A stretch of DNA of 63,999 nt, counting the filler, from Choristocarpus tenellus KU-1152 (Eukaryota; Protista; Phaeophyceae): NCBI GenBank assembly GCA_964200185.2. It is 11 parts of 11 records of this genome, joined end to end, with 100 filler letters (N's around TTAATTAATTAA, not from the genome) between each part and the next. Parts side by side here need not be neighbours in the genome. Positions count along the whole stretch, not along the records: positions 34,110 to 38,634 come from CAXNAD020014157.1; 10 more parts are not named here. One strand, written 5' to 3'. Position 1 is the stretch's first letter. Each line of letters opens with the position of its first letter. The position numbers and the translations under genes are program-made. This document shows, piece after piece, positions 32,746-39,048 of the stretch. A model generated the notes under the pieces. The model was not told the DNA's origin. It saw only the letters and a program-made list of their open reading frames with translations, and made no database searches.

Positions 32746-35700
32746 GTTAGTGATGAATACTGTTGATCGCTGTTTGGTTGTCAAAGATGTCAGGTGCCTC
32801 ATGTGGACATCTGAGTGTGCCTGCAATCCCTGCTGTATTGAACCTTTAATATGGTGACAATATGCATTACACCGATGTCTTCTTCACAGCATTTTATTAC
32901 AGGAAAAATATTTTCGTGTGTAATATGTATTTCTGAGAACTCAAACATGTGTGTGTGTTTGAGCCGTTACTGTTGAGTGGTCGACTGAACTCTACCGTCC
33001 AAATCCACACTTCGCTGTGGAGGTGTAAGCACATAAGACCTTCAGCACATATGAGAAGTGGTTTCTAGGGGATGGCCCTCATGTAAGCCCTACGTCTGCC
33101 CGGTGTCTTTATTGGTTGATCCTTGTTTTCATCTCGTAGTTGTAACTCCCAAATGTGTAACTGTCCATTTGAACAGATACTGGAAGAATTGGAGATGGAG
33201 GGGAATGGCCTCAACCCATGTGTATGATATGATATTTACATGTCTTGGCTATGTAACGTAATTGTCCTTGATGATCCATGGTACACATGGTAGACTTCAT
33301 TGTGAACTGAGAGTTACCTCTTTGAAAATGAGACATATTTGCTTTCCATTCTTTGTCTGGAGTAGACTCCTGCATTGAATCGTCCATCCCTCCCTCCCTC
33401 TGCCTGCAGTGGCATGTGATCCCACAGACGGGAGACAAAACTTGAATAAATGCTACATCCAGGGGACAGCATGAGTCCTTGAAAACAGAATCTTGAGCTG
33501 TGCACGCCTCCTACATCTCACATTACCCAAATGACTCACATCCCACGACAAACTGCATGAATATAAACACATTTTTCCCAGCTTTCGGGCATCCATGTAT
33601 CCAGAGAGTAGATCAGAGATGAAGTAAAATCCGTTATGTGTGTCCATGTATTGGAACATAGGAGAGTGTTATGGTGATTGAGGAGGAGAAGGAGCAGGCT
33701 CTGCATCCCCACGCAGCACACTCTAAGTTTCTTTTTACTCTCCACCTCTGGGCCAGTACTACCTGTTTAATTCGCTGTGAATTGTGTGTCTTGAACCTGG
33801 TAAATATGGAGTGAGGATAAAAATCCCCTTTGTATCAGGGCTAGGGTCGGGGGTAGGGGGTTGAGATTCCTATTATTTTTTACTGCTTTGATAAGATTGT
33901 GGTTGGGTTCAATATTTTAAAGCTGATTTGTTAGTAGCCAGACGCATCTACATATACTAGGGCAATTTTTTTTTTTTCCCCCATGAGAGTATGAGGAGAG
34001 AGATGGAGGNNNNNNNNNNNNNNNNNNNNNNNNNNNNNNNNNNNNNNNNNNNNTTAATTAATTAANNNNNNNNNNNNNNNNNNNNNNNNNNNNNNNNNNN
34101 NNNNNNNNNAAACAACCATTCTCATAGTCAAGCTCCATTCTCAATTTTGAGGATCCCCTGTTCTTAGCCTCCAGACTATCTGCGGCGTGAGTCCCGTAGC
34201 CAACATGACCACTCCAGTGAGTCGTACGTTTTTCGCGCGAACCCATAGGCTTGGGGTAAAAATTGAGAGCTGAGCGACGAAAGTGGAAACGCGCTGGCTG
34301 TACGCAACGCTTTAGCGCTACCTCCCAGTAAGAAACGATATCCGAAGGGTGGACCAGGAAGGAAAGGGTGGACTCACCAAGGTACAGCACATGAGTTACA
34401 TTCCTAACCTAATGTTCATCTACGCCGTTTCGCACCCAGATCCTTCCCGCGACCGCAAGATCGGAATCTGGTGTGTTTTTGTCATCGAGGAGGCGTAGCC
34501 AAATTCGGTCCGCCACGAGACAAGGCAGCAGCCTGGATAGGGGGGGGGTGGAACATCAAGCTCGTACGTAAAGCAGCCAGCGCGGTCACCTTTTCTCAAT
34601 ATCAACGATTTAGGGTTCTTTGCATCTTCTACGAGTAGTAGAGTTTGGAGGGCGTTATTGTACGATAGCGAACCTTGTGAGAGGATGGATAAAGAGCGTG
34701 TGCAATGTGTACGACGCAGCTACTTTAGAGAAGGTATGTCGGAGCCTCTTTAAGTGATACAATCAAGTTTTGAACGCCTAAGGGGGGAACGATTTCGAGG
34801 TACAGCTCACCAGAACTAAGATAGGCAGCACGAGCGAAGTCTGCCAAAATTGGTCTGAATCGACAAAGGACTTTTGACGCGGCAGTGGATTCGAGGATTG
34901 ATGGCTATGAGCAAAGTCACGAAGACAGATTTTCAAGCAAAAAACATTAAAGAATCCAACGTGAAAAAAGCTTTTTTTCATCAGAGGTCATTTGGCAAAG
35001 GTTACACCCTTGACGACGTCGACTTAAGGGACAGAGCGAGTAAGTAGTATAATTCGTTTTAAAGTGAACCTGTCAGGATCATTATTATATGCTGTGTGGA
35101 TATGGTAGAATATTAATAGTCCCGTTACTTTCCCCCCCTGTGGTATAGCAAGTTGAGTGGAAACTCCAGTCCTCAACAACCAGCATAGTAGTAGTGTGTT
35201 TCTTCCAATTAAAACAAATATGAAGAATATTAACAGTCGCCCTTCCAAAGCATACTTAATTTTCAAAGCTTCTGATCAAGTTCGTTTTCATACTCTCTCT
35301 ACACACACAATGTAATTACTTTTAGACTAGAGGCCTTTAGCGTGAACATATCAAAGTAGTACGGAGACAGGACAAACGCGAAGAACAAAAACAACACTCG
35401 ATCTATAGCATAACAAAAGGGGACTTTGACATTCAAGGCCTGAAAAATAAGCAAATAAATGCTCCCATCCGTTACTTCAACACAAATGCACTACATTTGA
35501 GGACAGTAGTAGAGGGTATTGCTAGGGCAGGTTACATTTCAATAAACAAGTTCCTCAAGGCTGGCACATCGGAATCTCCTTGTTTCTCCCACTTACGTCA
35601 AAGCACAAAAGATTCATGTACGAAGTAAAGGTCCACACATCACTTGAGTTTCTACTCTGAACCTTTCATATAAAACAGAAAAAAGTTCTATTGACAACTA

Positions 35701-36177
35701 TAGATGAAACACAGAGGGGTTTCAACGATGCCATCACCTCACAGAAGACAACTCCACTTCTTAACTAGCCTGTTACAGGTCTCTGTACCTTTATAATACC
35801 TAGCCAGGGAAACAAAACTAGTGCCTGAGCGTGACTATGATCACATCTCGATGAAGAAGGAATTTGGTGCAGGGAAAAAAAAATTCCATGCTTTCTTTTG
35901 GCTCAGTGCCACACTACACGTAACAGTTTGCATCATTGCAGTACGTTTTACCCTCCCTAAATCAAAATTCCACCTGACAGACTATTGTATCCTCTATCTC
36001 TGCCAATATTGCCACCAAAAAAAAAAGGTTGACATGGCTCCTCAAACACTCACAACCGCCCCAGCTAGAGTGACAGGACAATATGGGCAAAAAAAATTCC
36101 CTCTTCAAAAAGTCCCCCTCGGGAATCCCTTTCACATGTTTCACCAGGACCACTGTTTCCCCAGCAATCTCCTCCTC

Positions 36178-37837
36178 TCACACTATGGAAAGAGTCTGAG
36201 GCAGACTGACCTCCTCACCCTTCACACTCCTTACCACGGCCATGAGATCGGCCACGCTCTTTTTTGCCTCAGCATCACGGAGTCGCCCATCCACACGTTG
36301 AAGTGCCGAGAGCGCTGCAAACGTCACCGCTTCCTTTAGAGTCAACGGGTCCTTCCACGCCCCTGCAGCCAGGGCTAATGAACCAGCAAAACTATCGCCT
36401 GCGCCATTGGTATTGATAGGACTGTCCTTCCCTGGCGCAAACGCGGCCAACCTGATTGCACCCCCAGCCCATACTGCAACCTGTCTCCGAAGGGACAAGC
36501 TTGAATCCAGGCGGTCGTTGTCTGCAGTCACAGCTGTGAACGACCCTCGGCCTCCCATGGTGATACTCACCATTGCCACACCGTGGGAAAGGAACCACTC
36601 AGCAAGACTCTGCACATGCTGATCTTCTGAAACTCCCTCTCCTGTACTCCCAACTATGGCCTCGGCCTCCTCTAGGTTAGCGTGGAGCAAGTCTACTCTT
36701 GGGAGTGCCGAACCAATTACCTTCTCATGCCACTCCGCCCCTTTACTTGGGTCGACCCCGTTGAGGTCCATGCTGACCAGGGGGCTACCAGGCAATCTGC
36801 CTGCTTGATGAAGGACGTCTGAGAGCGTTTGTCCTTGGATCTGTGAGCCAACAGGAGAAAAGGAGGCAGGGGAAACAGAGGTGACGTCCAGGAGTTTAAG
36901 ACAATATAACCTCAAAACCTGTTGGCCAACTGTAATAAATAACATTATCATAACAACTGCTAGGCAGTTGTAAATCAGAGGGTCTCAGCACATTCTTTCA
37001 CTTCAAGTTTGAAGGGGTCTAGTCCGACCTAGGAGGATGCAAACAAATATCAAATGTCCTGCGCAGTGTTAACCAATCAATAAGAGCAATTTAGGCTCCA
37101 ATCTATTCACTCGCATAAAATGTTACAAAATGTTACAGTTGGTGCAGAACTCCAACAATGAACTCCAACATGAGAAAGCAGTACTCTTACACACACACAC
37201 CCCTCGAGCATAAGACACCCATAACAAACAACAACTGGACACAACAGAGAGGTAGAAAACAAGACGGTAGAAGCAGGCAGAGAGATAAAGAGGTATACCT
37301 TTGGTGTGAAGTGGGGATATCCATAGTGCACCACAACAATGGGAGAGCTGTCATCAGCAGAAATATCGCCAAGGGCCACCAAGACCTCTTCCGGGGTGAG
37401 ATCATTGTTTGCAGCAAGGTTAACAAAGCAGCCTCGTGCTCCAGACGTGTAGATGGGCAGCACAGCCAAGGCTGTTTGAGTAGATGGATCACGGATAACA
37501 CGATTGCAGTCCACTCCAGCAGCTGACATCTGACAGTGTTCAAAGCAGGTGGGTGCAGGATGGCCAGAGGAAGAATGAAGGCGAACTCTACATTGATGTT
37601 CACATGTACCTACCCATCAAAATATACACCAAGCACAATGCCAACTGCAGTGCAACGGATACTGAAGTGTAGACCGTAACGCCTACCCACCACAGCAATA
37701 GTGGCAATAGTGTATACAAAAGCAATAGTGAATACAAAAGCAATAGCGTATACAAAAAGGCTTGAGACAAGCAAACAAACAAAAAAATACTTCAAAGCTG
37801 AAACCATTGAGCTCTGCTCTGGCACCACAAGATCTGA

Positions 37838-37868
<31 letters not shown>

Positions 37869-38543
37869 AAATTCAGTTCCACAGACCCCTTCCCACGGCA
37901 GAGGAGTGAGAAAGAAAGAAAAAGACAGCTCGACCTGCTTGATCATCTCATTCCCATGGGCATCCGCGCCCATTTTGGTTATCGCCACCACCCCAGGTAC
38001 ACCCATCTCCGCCAACACGGTAGATGTCTGTGGGCACGATCCCCCAGGGCAGTACTTAGTCTCCTCAAAGCTCTGAATAGTCTCCACCCCTCCCTCAAGA
38101 GTCGACGCACACAGTTGAAGATCCAGGCAGCTGATCCCAGCACAAACTACCCTCCCTGTGATCAGTGCAGCAACGTCAGAACCACCTGGAACCTCCCCCG
38201 CCTTCTGCGCCAACCCTCCTCCCTCCCCCACCAGTGTGCCCTCAAGGGTCTCCTCAAGGGCTCGCATCTGTCTGAAGAAGCCCGGGTCCACTCCCCTGGC
38301 TCCTCCCTCAGGCACCTTGAAGAGGTAGGCAAGCGCACGAGCCACCTGTTCTAGGGGAGTGCCCACCCGAGCAAAGTAGTCGCACCAAACCGCCGCATCA
38401 ATCATCAGAGGGACACAGAGGGCGCTGTCCATGGCCCTGGTGTAGGTGAGCATGGTGTGGGCGCAGTTCATGAATCCGAGAGAGGTATACTCCACAACAT
38501 CTCTCTTCTCATCTCCGATGAGAGGCGTGTACATCACACGAAC
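36178..38543 (-). CDS. INO1: Myo-inositol-1-phosphate (inositol-3-phosphate) synthase C-terminus fused to a PfkB/ribokinase-family carbohydrate kinase; 5'-partial
   Basis: Exons 38543-37935, 37529-37299, 36840-36178 (all phase 0). MIPS part: [24 protein letters not shown]...[13 protein letters not shown]...LAYLFKVP...[10 protein letters not shown]. PfkB part from 38153: [12 protein letters not shown]...PGGSCPQT...KMGADAHG...DLNG...[10 protein letters not shown]...ITMGGRGS...NTNGAGDSF. Confidence 0.88.
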
Positions 38544-39048
38544 CTGGATAAGGGGGGTTGGGTTTCACTTCAGTTCAGTGCCATGGGGGGGGGGGAGTTG
38601 AAGGGCAGACAGATCATGCAACAACAGCAAGAGGNNNNNNNNNNNNNNNNNNNNNNNNNNNNNNNNNNNNNNNNNNNNTTAATTAATTAANNNNNNNNNN
38701 NNNNNNNNNNNNNNNNNNNNNNNNNNNNNNNNNNGAATGCATATGATGTATGTTCGAATTACTTCAAAACATGAACATAGGAGGGGGGGGGAGTGGGGGG
38801 AAACATTGGATTGAACTTGAAAGATAGGAGAGAAGTGGAGCAAGGAGGACGTTTTCATCTTTCACAAAATAGTTATCACAACCACCTGTGTCAATGTAAA
38901 AAAAAAATAATCTTCATTTTCTACCTCAGTAAGGCTGTTGTCTCACTCCTAACCCCAACTCACTCTAAAATAAAACTCGAACCCATTTGACATCATAAAA
39001 TGTCAACAAAATCAATCCAAACTCTTGAAGTATACATGCACACAAATA

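Follow-up and report, generated by a model that had tools for sequence, protein, structure and literature searches.

A divergent inositol-phosphate synthase fused to a PfkB-family kinase in Choristocarpus tenellus and other algae

The fusion gene and its transcript

The window, a stretch of 63,999 nucleotides joined from records of Choristocarpus tenellus KU-1152, was analyzed in the part that comes from CAXNAD020014157.1. This piece covers the three exons at the 3' end of a gene that is transcribed and spliced and encodes a two-domain protein of about 830 aa, in which the myo-inositol-1-phosphate synthase domain (MIPS, INO1) is followed by a PfkB-family kinase. All three coding exons lie on the minus strand in phase 0. 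The features, in the direction of transcription, are the following.

38544..38634, minus strand: 3' end of the upstream intron, with a polypyrimidine tract and AG acceptor
37935..38543, minus strand: junction exon A, 203 codons for the MIPS C-terminus, linker and PfkB N-terminus; AG/GT borders, phase 0/0, stop-free
38247..38543, minus strand: C-terminal end of the divergent MIPS domain, ~99 aa, by Pfam and PDB matches
38157..38246, minus strand: inter-domain linker, about 25-30 aa, with neither length nor sequence conserved
37935..38156, minus strand: PfkB kinase N-terminus, with the CxGxxCxD and GGS substrate motifs
37530..37934, minus strand: intron 1, 405 nt, GT..AG, removed in spliced contigs
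37299..37529, minus strand: exon B, 77 codons, which encode the lid strands of the kinase and the family motifs GxRxC and GYPH
36841..37298, minus strand: intron 2, 458 nt, GT..AG, removed in spliced contigs
36178..36840, minus strand: last exon C, 220 codons and the stop codon TGA; DLNG, NxxE (36678-36667) and NxNGAGD
34134..36177, minus strand: probable 3' untranslated region of at least about 2 kb, from a spliced contig that is unbroken from exon B to 34134

The remaining MIPS exons lie beyond the edge of the CAXNAD020014157.1 part, and upstream exons are present in relatives. The equivalents of yeast MIPS residues K412, D438, and K489 were found at 38507 (GDEK), 38429 (MDS), and 38318 (FKVP), and the kinase GAGD with its catalytic Asp at 36405-36394. 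An earlier note on this DNA had read these MIPS Lys and Asp residues, together with the GG, NxxE, and GAGD of the kinase, as retained, which agrees with our data. It had also described a Gly-rich linker and a Q after GG. A Gly-rich composition of the linker is not a conserved trait; the Q is present here, but the family has Q, M, or N at this position, so that it is no family signature.

Four runs of one study, which may include the source sample, were compared. The contigs of run X2, a run type not on record, kept the PfkB part and were joined at exactly 36840/37299 and 37529/37935, as predicted for both introns; runs X1 and X3 were unspliced. A single contig of this run (38084-38545) takes in the end of the MIPS domain, the linker, and the start of the kinase, and its continuation reads like the MIPS exon that comes before this one in Ectocarpus, an upstream exon outside the present piece. 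Another contig of run X2 shares sequence at 38084, close to where the kinase starts, and then diverges over 255 letters; it is probably a shared word or a chimera. The NCBI protein P0347 ('unnamed protein product, partial [Choristocarpus tenellus]') was 100% identical to residues 4-203 of exon A, to exon B, and to residues 1-205 of exon C. This model, flagged partial, ends 15 codons early, while the frame runs on through 36225-36178 to the TGA at 36178, and the C-terminus read through in this way matches those of the orthologues. No second gene was found in 34110-36177, and there was no Rfam match in the piece. Intron 1 contains an 18-nt unit in three tandem copies as well as a TG microsatellite (37704-37757 and 37830-37877), and the far 3' untranslated region (34110-34960) is repeat-like, with partial matches to many contigs and raised depth in DNA runs.

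The gene was searched against domain profiles exon by exon, with P0347 as the equivalent of the joined exons, and both families were matched. Residues 1-40 of exon A matched Pfam Inos-1-P_synth (E 1.6e-4), residues 39-100 matched NAD_binding_5 (E 0.015), and 38162-37935 matched the PfkB N-terminus (E 0.019); exon B matched PfkB 73-121 (E 0.001), and exon C matched PfkB 171-286 (E 1.4e-13). The MIPS fragment scored under the Pfam cut-off because it is short. Its only PDB matches were three eukaryotic MIPS chains, and full-length orthologues gave MIPS Pfam E values of 1e-52 to 1e-59 and passed the gathering scores of PF07994 and PF01658 (172-202 and 69-85 bits). P0347 scored 98 bits against PF00294, for which the cut-off is 25.8. 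The MIPS-PfkB fusion is therefore real. The claim that it lies within one exon and is not a splice artefact was confirmed by the stop-free exon 38543-37935, the spliced X2 contigs, and more than 100 homologues. A mis-assembly or a chance join of neighbouring genes is refuted, with practically no probability left to it, by a junction that lies inside one exon both in DNA and in spliced contigs and recurs in these homologues.

Distribution and published record of the fusion

The orthologue in Ectocarpus is CBJ31745.1 (UniProt D7FUT9), annotated 'myo-inositol-1-phosphate synthase', which by its InterPro set and its heat shock factor (HSF) gene neighbour probably corresponds to Esi0279_0022. It was 75, 65, and 58% identical over exons A, B, and C, with identical intron positions. 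The genomic loci of Ectocarpus and two close relatives have upstream MIPS exons, the same junction exon with identical borders, and the same two kinase exons. Exon A matched 24 proteins at 71-77% identity across its whole length. When a full-length query was used, PF07994, PF01658, and PF00294 were all present in 109 of the 120 matches listed, which answers the domain-architecture search that had been suggested. Among these 120 matches, carriers of the fusion included brown algae and diatoms as well as a pelagophyte and a haptophyte, those named being Ectocarpus, Nemacystus, Chrysoparadoxa, Phaeothamnion, Nitzschia, Fistulifera, Seminavis, Mayamaea, Epithemia, Chrysophaeum, and the haptophyte Chrysochromulina tobinii. 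A further search gave partial proteins from Fibrocapsa, Octactis, and Phaeomonas. Contigs from metagenome collections encode both domains in unspliced single ORFs of 930-1180 aa. We conclude that the fusion is widespread and ancient in algae with red-derived plastids, and that it was built from two known families.

Two variants of this architecture were observed. Many diatom members have an HMG box near the kinase C-terminus (17 of the 120 matches listed, for example L007, L012, and L021), and these may be three-domain proteins with a DNA-binding part. A kinase-less form of the fused-type MIPS paralogue also exists and ends in a conserved short helix; such copies (L034:2868-4292; L150:8001-9671; P0073) occur in diatoms and other algae, and some diatoms may have three MIPS-like genes. 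A motif scan of prokaryotic genomes with two patterns gave no match to the MIPS paralogue. Plasmids gave no kinase match and distant MIPS only, one of them in an ebo-type cluster; an origin of the paralogue from the ebo cluster was rejected on scores (78 bits).

UniProt and NCBI list the fusion (CBJ31745.1, D7FUT9) as an ordinary inositol synthase. In a 2014 supplement, Esi0279_0022 has MIPS and carbohydrate-kinase domains and is classed as decreased in copper, hyposaline, and oxidative stress; the paper itself treats it as ordinary MIPS (PMC4108028). A model of diatom metabolism mentions INPS without the fusion (PMC2173943). In the literature searched, which leaves most subscription journals outside, we found neither a discussion of a MIPS-PfkB fusion or its accessions nor a characterised enzyme of this architecture. 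The fusion is thus apparently undescribed in the literature, in line with the earlier note, which named no characterised enzyme of this architecture; the architecture itself is on record, though without discussion, in UniProt and NCBI and in the InterPro column of the 2014 supplement.

The MIPS half and the kinase half

The MIPS half was closest to eukaryotic MIPS, with 247 bits against rice, 119 against Bacteroides, and 44 against Archaeoglobus. It has the fold of ordinary eukaryotic MIPS (Foldseek E 6e-32; 27-35% identity), the Rossmann GxGG and GWD, and all tested catalytic Lys, Asp, and Asn residues, but the fusion lacks the N-terminal segment of about 60 aa and has the C-terminal kinase. 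D320, Q325, T326, K327, N354, D356, K369, K373, K412, D438, and K489 (yeast numbering) were invariant in 122-123 of 123 sequences, and K322, G324, N350, D410, and S439 were further invariant positions. Four lysines coordinate glucose 6-phosphate (G6P) in fungal MIPS (PMC11348189), and their equivalents here were assigned by spacing. The canonical motifs LWTANTER, NGSPQNT, GDDFKSGQ, DSKRA, and CEDSL were replaced by WSASVE, NGGSQNT, GTDFKAGQ, DEKRD, and MDS or SDS. In the pocket, S323A and T247V were each found in 122 of 122 sequences, and the other family-wide departures were T244S, N246S/C, S296G/A, P297S, D319T, and E437S/M. In ordinary MIPS, phosphorylation at S296 is inhibitory (PMC11348189), and the paralogue has no equivalent of this yeast phospho-serine.

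When ordinary MIPS encoded by viral contigs served as the outgroup of a tree, the paralogue split from ordinary MIPS at 100/100 on a long stem; for the order of the kinase-less and fused copies the AU p value was 0.32. The suggestion of a distinct paralogue is thus upheld by the replaced motifs and the tree, by which the MIPS half is a separate subfamily and not an INO1 orthologue. The family-wide pocket changes point to a job separate from that of ordinary INO1, and they would allow the cyclase to yield an isomer other than myo-inositol phosphate. The 38 published stramenopile INO1 proteins, including Ectocarpus CBN77493.1, all have the canonical DSKRA and CEDSL, and none is of the fused type (PMC6742357 supplement). 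Brown algae therefore hold both types, the ordinary stand-alone INO1 coexisting with the fusion. Ordinary MIPS of the eukaryotic type is encoded by six contigs of the viral collection (L137-L142), of which three are named as giant-virus bins.

The model of the Ectocarpus kinase domain showed a complete ribokinase fold (pLDDT 94), and the orthologue model aligned with ribokinase 1RK2 over 303 residues (Z 33.6, rmsd 2.9). The substrate Asp, the GG, the Glu of NxxE, and the catalytic Asp were conserved in all 23 sequences tested, and the first Asn of NxxE in 22 of them. The family is further marked by CxGxxCxD, GxRxC, GYPH, DLNG, and NxNGAGD. A small residue in GxGD marks the ATP users among these kinases (PMC5931981), and the small second residue of GAGD fits this criterion; the kinase would be expected to use ATP. 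The RxGRGD motif is absent from the fused kinase, which is therefore not pyrophosphate-dependent. Judged by these conserved residues, both halves are very probably active enzymes. The N-termini inspected by eye have no obvious signal peptide, and a cytosolic location of the protein is therefore likely.

The nearest solved kinases were YdjH, ribokinases, and fructokinases, which were tied at about 20% identity, so that no substrate can be read from them. The fold is shared with YdjH (3H49/3IN1) and ribokinase (1RK2) of E. coli (best profile E 1.4e-18, Z 31-34), to which the identity is about 20-23% and which have different acceptor-site residues. In the scores shown, no named PfkB equivalog (ribokinase, IolC, fructokinase, KdgK) reached its cut-off; with the Ectocarpus domain, ribokinase gave 75 bits against an NCBIfam curated cut-off of 299.65, and IolC gave 54 against 300. 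Action on a keto sugar acid, as in YdjH or IolC, would link the kinase to inositol breakdown. YdjH was the best PDB match by profile and by Foldseek, and the IolC model weakly matched 53 of 54 members, but these scores far under the cut-offs make this very unlikely, and VIA-align put ribokinase equal or higher. In addition, the position of the acid-binding arginine of sugar-acid kinases (DxN-R) is Gly (DLNG) here, and a neutral sugar is therefore favoured.

Alternatively, the kinase may be a cyclitol kinase, so that one protein would reach inositol monophosphate in two ways, by making it from G6P and by salvaging free inositol; we consider this possible but on the doubtful side. The fusion partner makes inositol phosphate, and PfkB-type myo-inositol kinases of the same superfamily are known from archaea (TK2285, 4XF7) and Thermotoga (TM0415, 1VK4) (PMC5931981) and from plants (maize LPA3/MIK; plant enzymes as cited in PMC6900528), the product of TK2285, Ins(3)P, being also that of MIPS. 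Inositol dehydrogenase-based myo-inositol metabolism in red algae, heterokonts, and haptophytes (PMC2173943) fits the range of the kinase, and scyllo-inositol accumulates in haptophytes (PMC7686483). However, 4XF7 and 1VK4 were absent among the PDB matches listed by profile, by single sequence (E up to 10), and by fold, and specificity for inositol would have to be an independent invention. The inositol salvage role that the earlier note had offered is not supported so far.

The nearest stand-alone relatives in an exhaustive profile search were, among the matches listed, red-algal kinases (Porphyridium, Timspurckia, Galdieria, and their kin), followed by amoebozoan and Planctomycetota proteins. 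The red-algal proteins, such as Porphyridium KAA8493705.1 ('putative sugar kinase YdjH'), share GxRxC, GYPH, D-x-NG, HxNxxE, and N-x-x-GAGD with the fused kinases but have no MIPS domain, and their function is putative. In trees with rows drawn from the best 150 matches only, the fused kinases clustered together, with an SH-aLRT of 97 in 23 rows and 99/99 in 12 rows, and were joined to the red-algal-like group at 99 and 100/99. Placement with other eukaryotic relatives was rejected at an AU p of 0.001 (LG+G4, 33 rows, the alternative having been chosen after the tree was seen). Since the fused kinases are one clade, one fusion event is enough, and it is reasonable to infer that the kinase came from the red-algal endosymbiont. 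An ochrophyte-haptophyte clade with red-algal kinase relatives can serve as a character in reconstructing how red secondary plastids evolved.

A scan of prokaryotes with the kinase motifs gave generic kinases only (23-32%). In one bacterial gene run (L147:8978-12799), a kinase of this type is found together with three genes that resemble those for URO-D/MtaA, mannitol-1-phosphate dehydrogenase, and lyxose isomerase; the run is possibly an undescribed hexitol pathway. Two other bacterial relatives had no sugar-gene neighbours. Members of the wider GYP-type kinase group are fused to an AAA_33 P-loop domain (P0478, P0481) or to a domain of about 470 aa (P0475, P0482). The latter looked cupin-like by eye, but a cupin sugar isomerase was not confirmed, no match being found in Pfam, NCBIfam, or PDB.

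Possible functions of the fusion protein

The reading that we prefer, at somewhat less than an even chance, is that the cyclase receives a sugar phosphate made by the kinase and that the two form a separate cyclitol route. The kinase would phosphorylate a free neutral hexose or hexitol, and the 6-phosphate would be passed to the NAD-binding MIPS-type cyclase, giving a two-step entry to a cyclitol pathway apart from the housekeeping INO1. The product, which may be myo-inositol phosphate or a different cyclitol phosphate, would serve a pool of storage compounds or compatible solutes. This proposal is suggested by the intact MIPS site with its family-wide pocket changes beside a coexisting INO1, by the conserved kinase site and the Gly of DLNG, by the bacterial relative beside mannitol-1-phosphate dehydrogenase-like and lyxose-isomerase-like genes (a single locus), and by the decrease of the Ectocarpus gene under copper, hyposaline, and oxidative stress. 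Against it, the MIPS paralogue occurs without the kinase and the red-algal kinase without MIPS, so that neither depends on the other. G6P is made by cells in any case, and a private hexose kinase is therefore not obviously needed. The full-length orthologue model (pTM 0.67) had confident domains with no fixed contact between them, which also speaks against this reading; the linker was the stretch of lowest pLDDT in the orthologue model.

The two domains might instead not act in sequence: the kinase could act on another metabolite, or regulate the synthase as a sensor of sugar or ATP, with the fusion kept for co-expression or control. Such an arrangement, which we regard as unlikely, would agree with the existence of both kinase-less and MIPS-less forms, with the other partners of the kinase group (AAA_33 and another domain), with the HMG box in many diatom members (17 of 120 matches listed), and with the loss of the S296 phosphosite, by which regulation may differ (PMC11348189). 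However, the catalytic and substrate residues of the kinase are nearly invariant across ochrophytes and haptophytes, and a widely kept fusion would usually mean a shared pathway.

Sugar-phosphate supply could also take a more specific form, which we hold to be rather unlikely, in which the fusion is the missing entry enzyme for a non-myo cyclitol in algae whose plastids are red-derived. The kinase would make a non-glucose hexose 6-phosphate, and the reshaped pocket (S323A, T247V, N246S, E437S/M) would close it to another inositol isomer or a deoxy-cyclitol precursor. This would account for scyllo-inositol and related solutes in haptophytes, with the single fusion common to ochrophytes and haptophytes marking a linked plastid history of the two.

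Brown algae, diatoms, pelagophytes, and haptophytes jointly account for a large part of marine carbon fixation. They contain a second conserved MIPS-like enzyme that has been handled as ordinary INO1 by databases and by at least one transcriptome study. If another cyclitol, or a route from free sugar, proves true, a gap in algal osmolyte and carbon metabolism would be filled, and bifunctional activity, if true, would make this the first bifunctional MIPS found in the literature searched. If the product is simply Ins(3)P, the result is an annotation fix of modest interest.

In the stress data for Ectocarpus, the HSF gene Esi0279_0021 was strongly down (-4.7, -2.0), and the fusion gene changed by -1.2 and -1.0 (PMC4108028). 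In Ectocarpus and in two related loci (L056:1-6001; L002:677-2089; L003:1317-4202), the fusion gene has an HSF gene close upstream. In L056 and L003 the two genes are head-to-head, and they possibly share a control region.
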